From sequence record MN871449.1: 64,000 bases of DNA. One strand, written 5' to 3'. The position numbers were made by a program, and so were the translations under genes. Of this stretch, positions 46,711 to 53,311 are shown piece by piece; within the stretch, counting starts at the first letter, position 1, and each line of letters begins with the position of its first letter. The notes beneath the pieces are model-generated. The model did no database searches. It was given only the letters and a program-made list of their open reading frames with translations, and was not told where the DNA came from.

Positions 46711-48981
46711 ATGAGAGAAAAGTTACCTAATGAACATCAAATGGATGTTGATCTGATAGGGACAGCCACTCACCTCGGACCCTGGGCAGTTTGTACTTCG
46801 CCTTCTCGTTTGGTTATGCTGGCATCGCAGATACAGCAAAAACTGATCACAAAAGGGATCAATCGACCCCGCTTTTTCGTGGGTGTTGAGAAAGAGTATG
46901 CCGAATATACTTTCGGTTGTCGTGTTCAGTTCCCTGCGGAAGTGATTGCGGTAATCGACAAGTTTGAGGTGGGTCGAGGTTCCGAGAGTTTTAAAAGTAA
47001 CCCGAAAAAGATTGTTATCGTACGTAACATGGAAACGCGTGAATACGACTACCTGGACTACGATACCTATTGTTCCCATCACACTAGCTTCGGCTTTGAA
47101 TTCGTCCCGGTCATAGAGAATCAAAAACTCATGCGGCCTGGCGAGATTCTTCAGCGAGGAGTTCGACTCAATCGTTCTCCGGGGGTAACGCCAGACGGCG
47201 ATTACATTTATTCTACCCGTACCAAAACAACCTTCCAAAGTCATCACGCTGTGACCGAAGACGGTTTTCTGGTGTCAGAAGAATGGTGTAAGGAGAATCA
47301 GACCACGGGCTTTGGCGAGGTCACGATTATTGTTCCTAAAGGTAAGTACCCGATCAATACCTACGGGAACAGTAAACGTTATCGTCCTCTTCCGTTACCA
47401 GGTGAGCAGATTCGTAAAGACGGACTCTTAATGGCGCTGCGCGAATATGACGACATGTTAGGTTGTGTCGAAATGACAGCGGAAGCCATGGAAGATTACG
47501 ACTACTATTTCGATGAGAAATATTTTATCGAAGCAGGCGTTGAGAATGCGCGAGTCGTTGATATCGACCTGTGGATGTCTGATGGGGATAAACTTGATGC
47601 CATGCCGGAGTTTACCGGGAAAGAATACGGTGAAGATGATGCGATCACACGTCTGTGGAAAGCGAAATTGCGTTACATGGATGCGATCGTCAAAGTCTAT
47701 CGTCAACTGCGTCGTGAAGCAGGGCAAGGAAAGGAACCCGCACTGTCGAAGAAACTCCATCGTCTTATCACTGATGCAATCGTCTTCACTTCGGCCCCAG
47801 AAGGAAAACGACGTTTCCGTTTAAAGAAACAGAGCATCCCCACGCTGTACGTGAAGATCTCTTTCATGTACGACATCACCCCCACTATCGGTTATAAGCT
47901 CTCGACTGACTATGGCATGAAAGGCGTTATCTGTGCGAAGAAACCTCGTGCTAAAATGCCGCGTTATGAAGACGGAACGACTGCTGACCTGATCGTTGAC
48001 GGTTTCAGTATTGCAAACCGAATGAACCCCAGTATGTTCATCGAGCAGTATTGTAATTACATCGCCGAACAGAGGGTGGAGAAACCGATTCGTGCCATGC
48101 TGAAGGAGAGTAAGAGTAAGGAGACGTATCTCGAATGTTACGAATTACTTCGTCGTTATTATCGGGCGGCGACGCCTGTTTATCTCGATAAGATTGATCA
48201 GCAAAACTGGTCGTTTGATCGGATTAAACAACACGTTGATGCCGTGGCAGAAGATGCGATTTTCGCCTATATGCCACCGTACACACCGGGCCTGGGGGCA
48301 GAACAATGTCGGCGGTTACGTGAGGCATTTCCTGAACCGGTTGAGCATGTTACCTGGATCAATGATCTGGGCGAACGTGTTACCAGTACGAAGCCAACGA
48401 TGATCGGGGAAATCAAGGTCATTGTCCTTGAGAAAACCGGCCATGACTGGGGTGCAGTGGATATCGCTAAACGACAGGTGCATGGTGTTCCTACCAAGCC
48501 TTCCGGTCGTGAGCGTTTCAACTTACCTTTCCGTAAAATCCCGTTCCGTCTCTTCGGTGAATCGGAGATTCGAAACTATGTTGGTATCGTTGGCGGGAAG
48601 TGGGCGGCTGATATGCTGGATCGTGCCAATAACCCGAAAGCGCAGGAATACCAATGGAGTAAGATTATCTCTGCGGAAAACCCTGTTGATCTCGATTTCT
48701 GTATTGACCGTAACGAGATCCCGCTGGGTAACAGCATGGCGCTGAACTATCTGAACAATACACTCTATTGCTCAGGGGTGAAAATGGCGTACATGAACGT
48801 GGATAACATTACCCCAGTGGAAGAAGAGAAAATCCGAGCGGCAACCCGAACCAAGCCGGGTTACAGAGACGATTTCTCCGACATTCCTGAAATAGAAATC
48901 AACTACGATGAAGACCCGGAACTGGAAGATGAGTTTGAAATTCCAGAAGAAGATAACGACGCGCTCGAAGAGGATGAATAA
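46711..48981 (+). CDS. Non-virion RNAP beta subunit, C-terminal part (phiKZ gp71-73-like)
   Basis: RLVMLASQIQQ, TEDGF, GYKLSTDYGMKGVI, NRMNPS and RLFGESE correspond to RpoB RALMGSNMQRQ, EDA, GDKxxxRHGxKG, SRMNxG and RFGEME. Confidence 0.92.
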   Translation: MREKLPNEHQMDVDLIGTATHLGPWAVCTSPSRLVMLASQIQQKLITKGINRPRFFVGVEKEYAEYTFGCRVQFPAEVIAVIDKFEVGRGSESFKSNPKKIVIVRNMETREYDYLDYDTYCSHHTSFGFEFVPVIENQKLMRPGEILQRGVRLNRSPGVTPDGDYIYSTRTKTTFQSHHAVTEDGFLVSEEWCKENQTTGFGEVTIIVPKGKYPINTYGNSKRYRPLPLPGEQIRKDGLLMALREYDDMLGCVEMTAEAMEDYDYYFDEKYFIEAGVENARVVDIDLWMSDGDKLDAMPEFTGKEYGEDDAITRLWKAKLRYMDAIVKVYRQLRREAGQGKEPALSKKLHRLITDAIVFTSAPEGKRRFRLKKQSIPTLYVKISFMYDITPTIGYKLSTDYGMKGVICAKKPRAKMPRYEDGTTADLIVDGFSIANRMNPSMFIEQYCNYIAEQRVEKPIRAMLKESKSKETYLECYELLRRYYRAATPVYLDKIDQQNWSFDRIKQHVDAVAEDAIFAYMPPYTPGLGAEQCRRLREAFPEPVEHVTWINDLGERVTSTKPTMIGEIKVIVLEKTGHDWGAVDIAKRQVHGVPTKPSGRERFNLPFRKIPFRLFGESEIRNYVGIVGGKWAADMLDRANNPKAQEYQWSKIISAENPVDLDFCIDRNEIPLGNSMALNYLNNTLYCSGVKMAYMNVDNITPVEEEKIRAATRTKPGYRDDFSDIPEIEINYDEDPELEDEFEIPEEDNDALEEDE

Positions 48982-50948
48982 TGCAAGTTGTGTGGGCAGA
49001 AGACATCGTACACTGGACCGAGGAAGAACTCTGGAAAAAGGAACACGACCACGATCGATTTCGTTTAGTCTTCAGTGATGGCGAGATCATTACAGATTGG
49101 TCGCAGACGATTGTTAGTTGGTATTTCTGGGAGGTATTTCGAGACTACCCTGACGCACAAATCAGTATTCGTCATCATCTCTGGGATGACTTTGATTCGC
49201 CGGGGTTGGAATTAAAAATCCTCAACCGCATGAAGGAGGTTGTTCTCGAAGCGTATCCGCATGAAGACATTGAAAACCTACAGGCTGCTATCTATCGCGG
49301 CAATAACCGGTTACACAATGCCTTCACGACGCGCGGCGAGGCGTATATCGATACCGTTGATGTTCTGACGTTATTGGATATCTACGACCGCCCTGAGATC
49401 CAGAATGCGCTCTATAACATGGAACCGAGCCCTGGCGGGGTCAACCGTGCATACGGGGTGATTTCCCGTGTGATTGCCACTGACCCCTTCTTACAAGGGA
49501 ACAGCATGGCGCTGGCCTGTCACATCGGTCAGACGAAGATGGCGCAGTTCCATCAGGTCATCGGGAAACGAGGGTGGTGTTCTGAAGTTGATCAGAGCAT
49601 CTTCCCTAACGTCGTCAATGCGGGGTTCTTCGAAGGGATACATCGGGCCAGTTTCTTTGCCATGATCTCCAGAGACGCCTCTAAAGCGCTCCAGGCGACG
49701 GACGATCCCGTTAAGCAGACGGAGTACTATAACCGTGAACTGCAGCTCTTTACGTACGTTGTGAAGAGTATTTGGATGGGGGATTGTGGAAGTACGGAAA
49801 CGATCCCGTGGACGGTGAAGAAAAACGAACTGGATAATATCTTACCCGGTAAGTTTTATCTCACTGAAACAGGACAACTCAAAGCCATTAAGGCAGGAGA
49901 CGTCTTCCTGGTAGGGAAAACGATCCAGCTGCGGAATGTGGCGTGTTGTTGGCACCCCGATGACGGTGTAGTCTGTAGCACCTGTATGGGCCAGTTGGCG
50001 CGGTCCGTACAACGAGGCACTAACCTGGGCCATGCGGCAACCGTAACCCAGAACGAAAAGGTCTCTCAGGACGTTATCTCGACGAAACACCTTCTGCGCT
50101 CTGCTGAGACGGAAGGTTTTGAAATCGATCCGTTCTATAAGGACTATATGGTCAATGCGTCGGATATTTCTGAGCTGATGCTGTCTGAGGCGATCTGGAA
50201 TCATCATGTGGAAATCGAAATCGATATGGCGTATCTGCCACGTCTTTCCGATATTCATGCGATGACCGAGTTCAGTCAAAATGACCTCCGTCGTATTTCA
50301 GGCGTAGAAGACGTCATGATCATCGTTCACCAAGGCGATGTCAAAGGGACTATCAAGGAAGAATTGATCGCTACAAGTCATTCGTCTTATAAACCGTTCT
50401 TAACCGCTGCCTTTATTCAGCACATGAAGGATTACGGTTTCCAGAACTTAGGGCGTAAGATTCGGGTTGATCTGAAAAACTGGGACCCTTCAGAAAGTAT
50501 TCTGAAATTCCCGGAACGTCATAGCTCGACGCTCGAGATGATGATGGAGTTAAAATCCAATATCTTCATGTCGAGTAAAGAATCGAAAGAGCGGTTACGG
50601 TATGACTTAACCGACCCTGACATTCTGGCAATGGCGTTGAAAGACATCTCGGAAATGACGAACCGTAAGTTCTCGGTTAACCTGGCGATTGTGGAAATTG
50701 TCCTTTACGCCATGATGTCGCGTGATCCGAAGAACGGCGATTTCCGTTTACCGAAGAAAGGGACGGGACGTTACTTCGCTACGAAATCCGATATCATGTC
50801 TGGACGGAGTCTCTCGGTGAAATGTGCTTACGAGAAGCAGTATCAAAACATGCTCTCTCCGGGCTCGTATGACCCGATTAAAGAGAACCATCCTTTCGAC
50901 TATCTGTTGTTGGATGTCGATAAGGAAATGCGTTTAAAACGTATCTAA
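48981..50948 (+). CDS. Non-virion RNAP beta-prime subunit, C-terminal part (phiKZ gp74-like)
   Basis: Bridge-helix-like KQTEYYNRELQL, DCGS, Zn motif CC...VCSTCMG, trigger-loop-like QDVISTKH. Confidence 0.9.
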   Translation: MQVVWAEDIVHWTEEELWKKEHDHDRFRLVFSDGEIITDWSQTIVSWYFWEVFRDYPDAQISIRHHLWDDFDSPGLELKILNRMKEVVLEAYPHEDIENLQAAIYRGNNRLHNAFTTRGEAYIDTVDVLTLLDIYDRPEIQNALYNMEPSPGGVNRAYGVISRVIATDPFLQGNSMALACHIGQTKMAQFHQVIGKRGWCSEVDQSIFPNVVNAGFFEGIHRASFFAMISRDASKALQATDDPVKQTEYYNRELQLFTYVVKSIWMGDCGSTETIPWTVKKNELDNILPGKFYLTETGQLKAIKAGDVFLVGKTIQLRNVACCWHPDDGVVCSTCMGQLARSVQRGTNLGHAATVTQNEKVSQDVISTKHLLRSAETEGFEIDPFYKDYMVNASDISELMLSEAIWNHHVEIEIDMAYLPRLSDIHAMTEFSQNDLRRISGVEDVMIIVHQGDVKGTIKEELIATSHSSYKPFLTAAFIQHMKDYGFQNLGRKIRVDLKNWDPSESILKFPERHSSTLEMMMELKSNIFMSSKESKERLRYDLTDPDILAMALKDISEMTNRKFSVNLAIVEIVLYAMMSRDPKNGDFRLPKKGTGRYFATKSDIMSGRSLSVKCAYEKQYQNMLSPGSYDPIKENHPFDYLLLDVDKEMRLKRI

Positions 50949-50952
50949 GGTG

Positions 50953-50986
50953 AAAGAAGGAGGGGTAATTCCCTCCTTCTTTTTTT
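50953..50986 (+). terminator. Intrinsic terminator
   Basis: AAAGAAGGAGGG-GTAATT-CCCTCCTTCTTTTTTT. Confidence 0.8.
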
Positions 50987-51013
50987 GTTTTATCTACGGT
51001 ATTTTTACACTAA

Positions 51014-53197
51014 GTGAGTAATTCCTATAGAGACCTATACCTAGAGAAAAGAATCTACGAGATTCGATTATCACCTGTGAGGGCTAAGACATTGGATCTA
51101 CGTATCACGCAATATAGCCACTACTTTTCCGTTTTTGCCTATACCGCCAAAGGCCGACAATTCCGTCGACAATTCACTGAGCACTTTATTGAGAAAAACT
51201 TAGTGAAGAAACGTGGGCGATTCCGAATGGAACCTACCAAGGTTTACGCACGCCGAGACCTTGAAACGGAAGAGACGTGTTTCCACATCAACACACTGGA
51301 ACGCTTTAAACAGGAAGCGGAAAAATACCAATGGAATGGCTGCACGTTTGAAATCGATGTTGTCCCGATGTACGAACCGGTGAAGTTTGAGTTTGAGATG
51401 GACTTCACGCCGTGGGATAACCAGGTGCCGATTATTGAATTCGGTTCGGGTCCCGGTATCCAGAAAGCGATCACCGCAGAGCCTGGGTTCGGTAAGGCTC
51501 AGACACTTTCTTCTAAAATCAGAGTCCCTGGCGGTTGGTTAACCATGGGCGAGATGAAAGTCGGGCAACAGGTTGTGACACCTAAGGGACGCCTCGCTTC
51601 TGTCATCGGGGTCTTCCCGCAGGGCGTGACCGACGTCTGGCGTATCCACTTTGCTGATGGGCGGTATACCGATGTTAACCCGGAACATCTCTGGTCAGTA
51701 CGAGAAAACGAGGAACAACAAGATAAAGTTATCACGACCCGCGAAATAAAAGACCGGCTAGGGGAAAGTTCTTTCTCTGTGCCGCTCATTCTCGGTCAGA
51801 CTTTACCTGCCGACTTCCGAATGGTAACAGAGACCTCGCAGGACGAAATGGAGTTTACGGTTAGTTTAGGGGGCCTTGAATTGTTGGAGGCAATACAATA
51901 TACCGCACGGGCTTATGGTGGCCTTGCCTACTTAGATGAGGCAAGGGACACATTACGTGTCGATTTCACCCAAGAGCGGTTAGCTATTACTTCAATCGAA
52001 GAACGCGAGCCTGAGGCCACTCAGTGCATCATGATTGATGACCCTGAACATCTCTACATCACCGATGACTATATCGTGACCCATAACACGGCTTGTTCAT
52101 TGGCGATGGCAAAGAATAACGGAACCCGTTTTGCGGTGGTAACACTCGGCGGCTACGAGGATAGATGGATACCGGAGTTTTACGCTAAACTCAATCTCAA
52201 GCCGGAAGAGGTTCGATCGTGTTGTGGTTGTGTAAAGCTCTATCGTTTATTACGGGAAGCGAAGACCACCGGCATTGATAATGTTAAGGCGATTTTCATT
52301 TCCACGGCCACGTTGAGGGACTTTTACAAGAACTGGAATAACGGGAGAGTGGTTGGGACTGATTGCGAAGATATCAATCCGAGAGATCTCTGGGAGTTTC
52401 TGGGGATAGGTCTGGTTATCATTGATGAAGCGCATAAAGAGATTCATGCGAACTTTGTCTCTGATCTCTATTCGCATGTTCCGAAAAAGATCTACTTGAC
52501 CGCGACGTTATTGGCTAAGATGGATTTTCAACTTTTCATCTACGAAACCTTCTTACCGAAAAAACTGCGGCGAAATGGCGGGCAACCGAGTAGGTATATT
52601 GATCTGGTGAAAGTCCAGTATAATCTGAAGGATTGGCAGAAAGCGAAAGTCGTCGGAGGTCAAGGGTCTTACAGTCATACGACGTACGAAGCCTGGATCA
52701 TGGCAGACAGGCAACGAGAGCAACGGTGGCAGGAATCGCTTTTTGATTACACCAAGGATAACTGGTTAGAGAAGAGGAAAAAGGAACATAAGCTGCTAAT
52801 CTTCTCGGCGACTATTGAGATGTGCCAGCGCCTGGCAACATTCTTCAGGAAACGTCTCCCGGAACTGGTGATCAACTCCTTTACATCAGGAGACGATTAT
52901 CAATTGTTACTGGATTCGGATATCATTTTCAGTACGATTGGTAAATCCGGTACCGCGGTGGATATCCCTAACTTGACGCAAGCCTATCTGACCGTTGCGA
53001 TTGACTCACCGAACGCGAACGTTCAGGCGTTAGGGCGTTTACGTGAACTCAAAGGGGAGAAGAAATTCCCACAGAGTTATCATTGCTTTGTTTGCATGAA
53101 CATTGATAAACATCTCGATTACTGGCGGAGTAAAGAAGCACTCTTCCGGGGAAGGGTATTGAGCACACGTACCGCACACTTGAATCAGATCATCTAA
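51014..53197 (+). CDS. SF2 DEAH-box helicase (UvsW/Rad25-like, phiKZ gp75 position) containing an intein
   Basis: Walker A EPGFGK|T (split by the intein), IIDEAH, LTAT, STIGKSGTAVDIP, QALGRLR. Confidence 0.9.
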   Translation: MSNSYRDLYLEKRIYEIRLSPVRAKTLDLRITQYSHYFSVFAYTAKGRQFRRQFTEHFIEKNLVKKRGRFRMEPTKVYARRDLETEETCFHINTLERFKQEAEKYQWNGCTFEIDVVPMYEPVKFEFEMDFTPWDNQVPIIEFGSGPGIQKAITAEPGFGKAQTLSSKIRVPGGWLTMGEMKVGQQVVTPKGRLASVIGVFPQGVTDVWRIHFADGRYTDVNPEHLWSVRENEEQQDKVITTREIKDRLGESSFSVPLILGQTLPADFRMVTETSQDEMEFTVSLGGLELLEAIQYTARAYGGLAYLDEARDTLRVDFTQERLAITSIEEREPEATQCIMIDDPEHLYITDDYIVTHNTACSLAMAKNNGTRFAVVTLGGYEDRWIPEFYAKLNLKPEEVRSCCGCVKLYRLLREAKTTGIDNVKAIFISTATLRDFYKNWNNGRVVGTDCEDINPRDLWEFLGIGLVIIDEAHKEIHANFVSDLYSHVPKKIYLTATLLAKMDFQLFIYETFLPKKLRRNGGQPSRYIDLVKVQYNLKDWQKAKVVGGQGSYSHTTYEAWIMADRQREQRWQESLFDYTKDNWLEKRKKEHKLLIFSATIEMCQRLATFFRKRLPELVINSFTSGDDYQLLLDSDIIFSTIGKSGTAVDIPNLTQAYLTVAIDSPNANVQALGRLRELKGEKKFPQSYHCFVCMNIDKHLDYWRSKEALFRGRVLSTRTAHLNQII
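51497..52087 (+). mobile_element. Class-3 (Ala-initiated) mini-intein, 197 aa, with a degenerate homing endonuclease remnant
   Basis: Starts AQTLSSKI right after GFGK and ends HLYITDDYIVTHN followed by Thr+1; block B EHLW, block F TQCIMID, block G Thr (WCT triplet). Confidence 0.92.
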
Positions 53198-53200
53198 GTA

Positions 53201-53245
53201 AGGCACACGACTGAGAGAGGCAAAACCTCTCTCAGTCGTGTGCCT
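53201..53245. repeat. Perfect 20-bp inverted repeat
   Basis: AGGCACACGACTGAGAGAGG-CAAAA-CCTCTCTCAGTCGTGTGCCT. Confidence 0.9.
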
Positions 53246-53311
53246 GTGTAATTATTTTGTTATCGTTAAAATAGTAAGAAGTTAATTAACCAGTGAAGTT
53301 GGTTTAAAACA

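Follow-up and report, generated by a model that had tools for sequence, protein, structure and literature searches.

A Class 3-Type Mini-Intein With an Endonuclease Remnant in the Helicase P-Loop of the Klebsiella Jumbo Phage KpXa_1

Introduction

Inteins of class 3 have no N-terminal nucleophile and are characterized by a tryptophan-cysteine-threonine (WCT) triplet at positions B:12, F:4, and G:5; most of them are found in helicase-like ATPases, at the P-loop and with Ser or Thr at the +1 position (PMC2807308, PMC3196547, PMC5050341). In the present work, we describe an element of this kind in a helicase gene of KpXa_1, a phiKZ-like phage of the genus Siatvirus with a genome of 304 kb and the host Klebsiella pneumoniae (record name "Serratia phage KpXa_1", MN871449.1). 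All positions refer to the window, viz. the whole stretch of 64,000 nucleotides (nt) of this record that was analyzed. The closest described inteins are DnaBi1 of Mycobacterium smegmatis (6bs8/6own) and DnaB1 of M. chimaera (MchDnaB1; 6rix/6riy), which share with the KpXa_1 element an Ala at position 1, the WCT triplet, a His-Asn end, a hydroxyl residue at +1, and the location in a helicase P-loop, and which are likewise mini-inteins, the linker between their blocks B and F being thought to be an endonuclease remnant. They interrupt bacterial DnaB, with Ser+1 and an Asp at B:7, whereas the KpXa_1 element interrupts a phage superfamily 2 (SF2) helicase, with Thr+1 and an Asn at B:7. The KpXa_1 element also lacks the second cysteine of DnaBi1, and hence its internal disulfide trap, and its remnant of about 60 amino acids (aa) is predicted to be folded, whereas the linker of DnaBi1 is disordered (PMC6195587).

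The same signature, together with a proposed chemistry involving two branched intermediates, is shared with the inteins of mycobacteriophage Bethlehem DnaB (the class 3 prototype), Deinococcus radiodurans Snf2, and mycobacteriophage Catera gp206, which originate from phages and occupy helicase-type ATPases, for the most part at the P-loop (PMC2807308, PMC3196547). By tblastn, mycobacteriophage inteins were matched at 30-36% identity. However, the Bethlehem intein is of full length (341 aa), includes the domain of an endonuclease, and has Pro as its first residue, after Gln(-1), whereas that of KpXa_1 is a decayed form of 197 aa from a jumbo phage of Enterobacteria. The class 1 (Cys1) inteins PI-SceI (Sce VMA1), PhoVMA, TliVMA, and PI-TkoII resemble it in the HINT fold and in the position of the inserted domain, but their endonuclease is complete and active, they have a region for DNA recognition, and they are 12-14% identical to it. 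The same host gene is interrupted at the same GK/T site in Erwinia phage Rebecca gp251 (345 aa), Kwan gp48 (342 aa), Haymo HAYMO_291 (348 aa), and the metagenomic proteins P0005 and P0006. These full-length alleles share the splicing blocks of KpXa_1 (N-lobe identity 45-57%) and align with it in block H; unlike KpXa_1, they retain the LAGLIDADG domain (LGDG and LLDTDG; PF14528, E 1e-10 to 1e-11) and are presumably mobile.

The KpXa_1 element is a real, unannotated but otherwise ordinary class 3 mini-intein, and it involves no new mechanism. Phage helicases with a class 3 intein in the P-loop have been on record since 2009-2011, and a mini-intein that retains part of an endonuclease is nothing unusual. 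Literature searches on inteins in jumbo or chimalliviral helicases turned up no account of the present one, and in the public records of these Klebsiella jumbo phages the gene is labeled simply "DNA helicase" or "hypothetical protein." Our analyses have established that there is an insertion and where exactly it begins and ends, which residues are conserved, what fold is predicted, that the remnant is homologous to an endonuclease, and that empty, full-length, and decayed alleles all exist. We consider it very probable that this class 3 mini-intein is descended from a full-length LAGLIDADG intein that homed into the GK/T site, and that it is now a non-mobile relic whose splicing is most likely constitutive.

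Results and Discussion

The Insertion and Its Exact Boundaries

The intein is located at 51497..52087 (+ strand) and consists of 591 nt, encoding 197 aa in frame (AQTLSSKI...DDYIVTHN). It begins with Ala1 (GCT, 51497-51499), ends with Asn197 (AAC, 52085-52087), and is followed by Thr+1 (ACG, 52088-52090). A first-pass annotation, made from the sequence alone, had given these same coordinates, length, Ala start, His-Asn end, and Thr+1, and the codon-by-codon reading reproduces all of them exactly. The insertion separates the Lys from the Thr of the Walker A motif (GK/T), and joining of the exteins in silico yields GFGKTACSL. The orthologue from Klebsiella phage Centimanus (504 aa) contains an uninterrupted GFGKTACSL, that from Moabite (505 aa) an uninterrupted GFGKTMISL, and the RAY orthologue is likewise uninterrupted; the split of Walker A and the restoration of GFGKT, both proposed previously, therefore match the intein-free orthologues. 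When residues 136-332 are removed from the KpXa_1 helicase, the remaining 504 aa have an intact GFGKT and are 85.3% identical to the Centimanus protein over 504 aa. At the DNA level, the match to Centimanus/FBKp24 extends as far as query base 483 and stops there; this base, window position 51496, is the last one before the insert. The window contains one such intein, and it occupies a single place in the genome.

Two other interpretations of the insert were rejected. A group I or group II intron finds no Rfam match in 50900-53300 beyond spurious, sub-threshold matches to terminator hairpins, and the insert is an open and conserved coding frame. That the insert is a normal domain of the helicase is ruled out by the intein-free orthologues.

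Class 3 Signature and Predicted Fold

Both splicing lobes can be recognized within the insertion. The N-terminal lobe of the HINT domain (51497..51784, +; residues 1-96) contains block A, with Ala1 and no nucleophile, and block B, which reads N61-P-E-H64-L-W66; this lobe is 45% identical to the full-length intein of Rebecca (E 1e-21) and aligns to residues 4-70 of 6bs8. His64 (B:10), Leu65, and Trp66 (B:12, the W of WCT) are encoded at 51686..51694 (+), and the His and Trp, which are invariant in the family alignment (72/72), align to His65 and Trp67 of 6bs8. The C-terminal lobe (51977..52087, +; residues 161-197) contains block F, TQ-C177-IMIDDPEHLY, and block G, IV-T195-H196-N197; it is 41% identical to that of Rebecca (E 9e-9) and aligns to residues 103-139 of 6bs8. 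Cys177 (F:4; 52025..52027, +), the sole cysteine of the intein, is also invariant (72/72) and is the predicted initiating nucleophile and branch point. It lies within TQCIMIDDPEHLY and is aligned to Cys118 of 6bs8 in VRCVEVDNPEHLY. Thr195 (G:5), His196 (G:6), Asn197 (G:7), and Thr+1 (G:8, the Thr of Walker A) are encoded at 52079..52090 (+) and are conserved in the family.

Eight positions are invariant in the alignment of 72 sequences, viz. Lys(-1), Gly13, His64, Trp66, Cys177, Tyr187, Thr195, and Asn197, and three others are nearly so (Ala1 in 66/72, His196 in 71/72, and the +1 residue, which is Thr in 68 and Ser in 4). The assignment to class 3 made by the first-pass annotation agrees with the presence of Ala1, the WCT triplet, the His-Asn end, and Thr+1. 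Its placement of the triplet was correct for Trp66 (in EHLW) and Cys177 (in TQCIM), but the Thr, which it had located in YITDD, is Thr195 of V-T-H-N according to the definition of the triplet (PMC5050341, PMC3196547, PMC2807308); the codon of this residue, the T of WCT, is at 52079-52081.

The closest sequences in the PDB are the M. smegmatis DnaB intein 6bs8 (E 1.9e-8) and the M. chimaera structures 6rix/6riy, followed by gp41-1. From the family alignment, AlphaFold2 produced a model with a mean predicted local distance difference test score (pLDDT) of 91.6 and a predicted template modeling score (pTM) of 0.88, and the best Foldseek matches of this model are class 3 inteins (E 1e-8; template modeling score (TM) 0.84-0.89, normalized by target). 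VIA superposition on 6bs8 gave a Z of 20.0 and a root-mean-square deviation of 1.5 Å over 123 residues with 27% identity, and the Z values to class 3 inteins were 19-20. As modeled, the KpXa_1 intein would thus possess the HINT fold.

A Remnant of the Homing Endonuclease

Residues 97-160 (51785..51976, +), which lie between the two splicing lobes, are predicted to form a helix-strand-helix-strand-strand and carry neither a LAGLIDADG motif nor a catalytic acidic residue; we interpret this segment as the remnant of a LAGLIDADG homing endonuclease. Its core (51842..51943, +; residues 116-149, DEMEFTVSLGGLELLEAIQYTARAYGGLAYLDEA) corresponds to block H, the strand-helix-strand that follows the second LAGLIDADG motif. 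The endonuclease of inteins is made up of blocks C, D, E, and H, of which H is the last (PMC3196547). In an alignment of short, intermediate, and full forms, the full-length relatives read LGxxLGDG...LLQGLxDTDG...SxxLAxxVQYLVRSLGGIA; the forms of 226-237 aa (P0044, P0008, and P0012) have lost the first motif and have a degenerate second one (e.g. LLQSITNG), the forms of 197-198 aa retain only the last piece of the endonuclease, and those of 143-147 aa retain none of it. In this alignment, LELLEAIQYTARAYGGLAYL of KpXa_1 is placed onto LAESVQYLVRSLGGIAKL of the full-length forms, and both LAGLIDADG motifs (blocks C and E) fall in gaps of KpXa_1, which thus lacks the features of an active endonuclease. 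A strict LAGLIDADG (DOD-type) motif was present in 80 of the 87 inteins of 330-420 aa and in none of the inteins shorter than 260 aa, including KpXa_1. The earlier description of a mini-intein lacking the LAGLIDADG motifs is in accord with this count and with Pfam. Since no catalytic endonuclease motif is left, the KpXa_1 intein cannot home by itself.

More sensitive comparisons also point to block H. The middle of KpXa_1 matches that of P0004 (E 2.6e-6), and when the middles of KpXa_1, P0003, and P0004 were compared by hhalign with a profile of 84 full-length endonuclease regions, the match extended over residues 116-149 with a probability of 95.1% and an E of 3.1e-8. Independent support comes from the AlphaFold2 model, in which the block-mean pLDDT over the remnant is 74-95. 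Full-length PI-SceI aligns over 191-205 of the 207 residues of the model, as compared to 140 residues for domain I of PI-SceI alone and 123-140 for mini-inteins, and this longer alignment indicates that the extra ~60 residues occupy the place of the endonuclease domain. On the basis of the alignment series, the hhalign result, and the superposition on PI-SceI, the middle of the KpXa_1 intein is a genuine remnant of block H, as had been suggested for LELLEAIQYTARAYGGLAY from its resemblance to the last block of these endonucleases.

A second fossil piece, LPADFRMVTETSQDEMEF, which MAFFT aligns to the strand pair of the first half-domain, was also considered and rejected; hhalign gave it no separate support, and the halves of LAGLIDADG proteins are pseudo-symmetric.

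The Intein Family and Its Alleles

A search with the insert alone identified 239 proteins at E <= 1e-3, a result far outside what chance would give, and the 120 of these that were listed, together with KpXa_1, Rebecca, and Kwan, constitute the 123 proteins from which inteins were cut. An insertion with the same N- and C-terminal blocks (typically AQPLxSKI...DDYIVTHN) is present in 123/123, in nearly all of them after the GK of a P-loop and before Thr or Ser, and the hosts among the listed matches include SF2 helicases, DnaB, PhoH, AAA+ ATPases, SMC-like proteins, RecA, and terminases. The inteins range from 143 to 786 aa in length: 8 are of 143-169 aa, 4 of 197-198 aa (viz. KpXa_1, its 98% twin P0001, P0003, and P0004), 22 of 211-312 aa, 87 of 332-418 aa, and 2 of ~785 aa, the last (P0002 and P0010) representing much larger inserts. 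A minority of the members start with a residue other than Ala (Val in Kwan gp48; Ser, Glu, Asp, Leu, His, or Pro elsewhere) and retain the W, C, and T. This variation at position 1 is consistent with a non-catalytic role of that position in class 3 inteins.

In 33 of the 123 hosts, the exteins match the spliced KpXa_1 helicase, and all of these except P0050 (14 bits) do so with more than 80 bits and are taken to be orthologues; their inteins are of 143-359 aa. Some of these orthologues carry, at the same site, full-length inteins of 342-356 aa with a LAGLIDADG endonuclease. The insertions of Rebecca (345 aa) and Kwan (342 aa) are found at the same point, with both LAGLIDADG motifs visible and with PF14528 matches of E 2e-10 and 1e-11, respectively. 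In a tree of the splicing lobes, for which the alignment comprised only 109 columns and in which many forks are unresolved, KpXa_1 is placed among the full-length inteins that interrupt orthologous helicases (P0005, P0006, and P0009; forks starred 97/83 and 98/83), and P0003 and P0004 form a separate, strongly supported pair (100/97) beside a full-length intein. The forms of ~197 aa in KpXa_1 and in P0003/P0004 may, from this placement, be independent and possibly convergent decays. The inteins of P0003 (134-331) and P0004 (158-355) are each 198 aa in length, are 62% identical to each other in a gap-free alignment, and have the same remnant architecture as KpXa_1. Their exteins are unrelated, one being a gp75-type helicase and the other a second SF2 type shared with P0008/P0012, and the occurrence of such similar inteins in unrelated exteins indicates that an already reduced intein has moved between helicase genes.

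Two pairs of phages differ in whether the intein is present. Within one species (Agricanvirus ray), RAY gp250 (515 aa) has no intein and Rebecca gp251 (860 aa) has one of 345 aa. The exteins of these two differ at 26 of 1548 nt, with changes at positions -4, -1, and +1 of the site, where RAY has Ser+1 and Rebecca has Thr+1; these differences could represent a co-conversion tract or a homing-resistant site. In the second pair, Moabite lacks the intein and Serratia phage Haymo (HAYMO_291) has one of 348 aa, the exteins (505 aa) being 99.8% identical, an identity indicating that the intein was either gained very recently or lost precisely. Inteins of the homing type pass through a cycle of empty site, invasion, and endonuclease decay. 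The intein-free, full-length, and decayed forms found in related phages, all at the GK/T site, represent the ordinary homing cycle of a selfish element, and they supply the allele comparison that the first-pass annotation had called for. The core helicase of the nucleus-forming phages thus turns out to be much frequented by inteins: the site occurs empty, with a full-length or half-decayed intein, or with a minimal one, and some presence/absence pairs fall inside one species. This natural allele series, in which KpXa_1 completes the series of decay, is convenient for studies of intein homing and decay.

The Siatvirus alleles themselves provide a further observation. Between MJ359 and KpSz_1, the synonymous divergence (dS) of the intein (0.19, 23 changes) is 4.6 times that of the exteins (0.041, 13 changes; Fisher p 1e-5), and this intein segment seems to have a history unlike that of its host gene, for example through exchange of alleles by recombination between co-infecting phages.

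Splicing, Selection, and Alternative Explanations

According to the proposed history, a full-length LAGLIDADG intein would have homed into the P-loop of the non-virion SF2 helicase that belongs to the core genes of phiKZ-like, nucleus-forming phages. Internal deletions in the Siatvirus lineage would then have removed the endonuclease except for a folded remnant of block H, and the intein would now be inherited with the helicase gene, persisting because only an exact deletion would restore Walker A. In the 701-aa precursor the P-loop is split, and the protein is presumably dead as an ATPase. Cys177 (F:4), activated by His64 and Trp66, would attack the bond between Lys(-1) and Ala1 to give a branched intermediate with a thioester at block F; the N-extein would next be transesterified to the hydroxyl of Thr+1; Asn197 would cyclize with the help of His196, freeing the intein of 197 aa; and an O-to-N shift would produce the Lys-Thr peptide bond of a 504-aa helicase with an intact GFGKT. 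This chemistry is transferred by homology from the inteins of Bethlehem DnaB, Deinococcus Snf2, and M. smegmatis DnaBi1 (PMC2807308, PMC6195587).

Patterns of substitution provide indirect evidence of splicing. Among the variable codons of five Siatvirus alleles, each of which carries the intein, 42 synonymous and 2 non-synonymous ones lie in the exteins, where the ratio of non-synonymous to synonymous rates (omega) is 0.02-0.03, and 22 synonymous and 10 non-synonymous ones lie in the intein (omega 0.03-0.12). Since the helicase is under strong purifying selection and carries 197 residues inside Walker A, excision and ligation would be required for its function. The mature protein would accordingly be of 504 aa rather than 701 aa, which is of importance for expressing, tagging, or modeling this core helicase, and the class 3 intein itself, which is compact, contains one cysteine, and comes from an enterobacterial phage, is a candidate tool for protein engineering.

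Several points weigh against the interpretation of the element as a constitutively splicing relic of a homing intein. Splicing of the precursor, and its chemistry, are what we infer from the analyses described above. Pfam models fail to recognize the KpXa_1 intein: neither the intein nor the whole precursor gave an intein, Hint, or LAGLIDADG family when scanned, the matches being limited to sub-threshold helicase ones, and recognition came instead from PHROGs (intein-bearing terminase, primase, and helicase families), from PDB sequences, and from the large protein search. With regard to the remnant, pairwise BLASTP of the KpXa_1 intein against the Rebecca precursor aligned the splicing lobes and did not detect the middle. 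Against a hidden Markov model (HMM) of the same 84 endonuclease regions, the middle of KpXa_1 alone scored a weak 9.6 bits, which is above all of 2000 shuffles (best 4.9), and its block-H part alone scored -1.5 bits, as compared to 25.2 bits for P0004 and 16.2 bits for P0003; in hhalign, KpXa_1 alone reached probabilities of 59% and 8%. The homology of the remnant depends upon the two 198-aa relatives P0003 and P0004 as intermediates and upon predicted structure. The intein protein also evolves faster than the exteins (non-synonymous changes at 10/32 vs. 2/44 variable codons; Fisher p 0.003), and the omega of the remnant, ~0.19 from 10 changes in one comparison, does not, at this small number of sites, distinguish purifying selection from neutrality. 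Lastly, a Gly31Arg change (PKGR to PKRR) is present in KpLz-2_45, MJ359, and P0001 at a turn position that is Gly in 71/72 sequences, in addition to Gly12Asp at a variable position; judging from this conservation, splicing efficiency may differ between alleles and may possibly be slower in those with Arg31.

The main alternative to constitutive splicing is that splicing is conditional and that the intein has been kept as a gate on helicase activity, responding to oxidants, metals, temperature, single-stranded DNA, or import into the phage nucleus. We consider this unlikely. The catalytic nucleophile is a cysteine, and oxidation acts as a reversible inhibitor of related class 3 inteins (M. smegmatis DnaBi1, PMC6195587; N-cleavage of MchDnaB1 by H2O2, PMC7664689). 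However, sensitivity to oxidants (and zinc) is generic to thiol nucleophiles, and some sensitivity in vitro would be unsurprising. The redox trap of DnaBi1 is an intramolecular disulfide between Cys48 and Cys118 (PMC6195587), whereas the KpXa_1 intein has one Cys, no equivalent of Cys48, and hence no trap of the DnaBi1 type. The Cys+3 of the C-extein (TACSL) could in principle pair with Cys177, but it is a feature of the extein that is present in the intein-free Centimanus, absent in Moabite, and variable across the family. An unspliced precursor should be inactive, the insertion being in the P-loop, and the phage nucleus is where the orthologous RAY gp250 acts (PMC10299810); yet no intein interrupts this core helicase in the close relatives FBKp24, Centimanus, Moabite, PhiEaH1, and RAY, and the mobile full-length inteins at the same site elsewhere represent the pattern of a selfish element and not that of a recruited regulator. 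Purifying selection on the intein would fit a switch, but it is already accounted for by the need to splice. The redox- or stress-sensitive switch suggested by the first-pass annotation thus finds no support, given the single Cys, the lack of a counterpart of the Cys48-Cys118 pair, and the intein-free sister phages. A narrower version, in which the single exposed Cys177, perhaps together with Cys+3 or the folded remnant, ties helicase maturation to the redox or metal state or to arrival in the phage nucleus, is decidedly unlikely; if it were true, a nucleus-forming phage would possess a post-translational timer on recombination or replication.

It is very unlikely, in our assessment, that the remnant has been recruited for a new role, such as binding of DNA or of a partner, or that it is needed for folding of the splicing domain. 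Recruitment would account for the survival of a folded piece of ~60 aa in place of a bare linker, and a well-ordered remnant is predicted (block-mean pLDDT as given above), in contrast to DnaBi1, the linker of which is disordered (PMC6195587). A QxxxRxxGG motif that resembles block H is found in 4/4 of the inteins of 197-198 aa and has been kept by two non-sister lineages (KpXa_1 and P0003/P0004), and residues 97-160 are unchanged between most Siatvirus alleles. However, the remnant has been wholly lost in the eight relatives of 143-169 aa, four of which (143-147 aa) are in orthologous helicases, and hence it is dispensable for splicing in this intein family. Moreover, the KpSz_1 remnant shows 4 non-synonymous vs. 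6 synonymous changes, an omega that no other part reaches, and no functional motif was found in the remnant by Pfam or PHROGs. A dead intein, with no splicing and with a helicase that is non-functional or works as a fusion, is most improbable: although the endonuclease is lost, some alleles carry Gly31Arg, and an inactive class 3-like intein is documented in Arthrobacter Arth_1007 (PMC3196547), the catalytic His B:10, Cys F:4, Asn G:7, and Thr+1 are all intact, unlike in Arth_1007, every intein-bearing allele has exteins that are full-length and very strongly constrained by purifying selection, the phage family has this gene in its core set (PMC10299810), and ATP binding is incompatible with a stretch of 197 aa that separates the Walker A Lys from the Thr.

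The Host Gene and Its Neighborhood

The helicase precursor gene (51092..53197, +) comprises 701 codons and a stop and encodes an SF2 (UvsW/SNF2-like) protein that matches PHROG 16, DNA helicase (E 2.9e-30). It starts with TTG, with GAGGG 8 nt upstream. The listed open reading frame (ORF), 51014-53197 (+), would give 727 aa from a GTG. This GTG at 51014 has no ribosome-binding site, and 51014-51091 overlaps an AT-rich intergenic stretch; the TTG at 51092 is the start annotated in MJ359 and LPKP23. Translation probably starts at this TTG, giving a precursor of 701 aa and not 727 aa. The N-extein (51092..51496, +; 135 aa) ends in the first half of Walker A (...AEPGFGK), and the C-extein (52088..53197, +; 369 aa and a stop) begins with TACSL and contains a DEAH box (IIDEAH) and the C-terminal helicase motifs. 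The nucleotide identity of the gene to nine related records, including Klebsiella phage KpLz-2_45 (Siatvirus), MJ359, and LPKP23, is 97.6-98.5%, and that to KpLz-2_45 is 98.4%.

The gene preceding the helicase (48981..50948, +; 1968 nt) encodes the beta' subunit 2 of the non-virion RNA polymerase (nvRNAP) and is the orthologue of RAY gp249 and phiKZ gp74, with the same length as RAY gp249. The order RNA polymerase subunit followed by helicase is common to KpXa_1, Centimanus, Moabite, Rebecca, Kwan, phiKZ (gp74-gp75), and RAY (gp249-gp250), where gp250 is a non-virion SWI/SNF helicase located downstream of gp249, the nvRNAP beta' subunit 2. This shared synteny identifies the KpXa_1 helicase as the orthologue of phiKZ gp75 and RAY gp250, and by tblastn it matches the helicases of phiKZ, PhiPA3, Goslar, and RAY-like phages. 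Judged by homology and by its position after the nvRNAP beta' subunit 2, it is the core non-virion SF2 helicase of the Chimalliviridae.

This helicase is a core gene of the chimallin-encoding phage family, and RAY gp250, which was studied as a fusion to green fluorescent protein (GFP), localizes inside the phage nucleus (PMC10299810). The RAY protein of that GFP work is the intein-free form. A preprint on gene essentiality judged by transposon insertion contained no information about this helicase gene. KpLz-2_45, FBKp24, PhiEaH1, Moabite, and PCH45 are among the phages that encode chimallin (Prichard et al., supplementary lists; PMC10299810). A tblastn search with the phiKZ chimallin gave no match reaching the genomes of Siatvirus, FBKp24, or Moabite, and membership of the KpXa_1 lineage in the nucleus-forming family is taken from these supplementary lists. 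The listing of KpLz-2_45 and the localization of RAY gp250 (PMC10299810) are in keeping with the earlier attribution of the helicase to a nucleus-forming phage.

An antisense ORF of 96 aa (51499-51789, -) lies wholly within the segment coding for the intein; it shows no sign of being a gene and is probably a by-product of composition. G+C-rich hairpins followed by runs of T are present at 50953-50985, after the RNA polymerase subunit gene, and at 53186-53258, after the stop of the helicase; the latter gave spurious, sub-threshold Rfam miRNA matches on both strands. From their sequence, both hairpins look like intrinsic terminators, and the helicase may form a transcription unit of its own.

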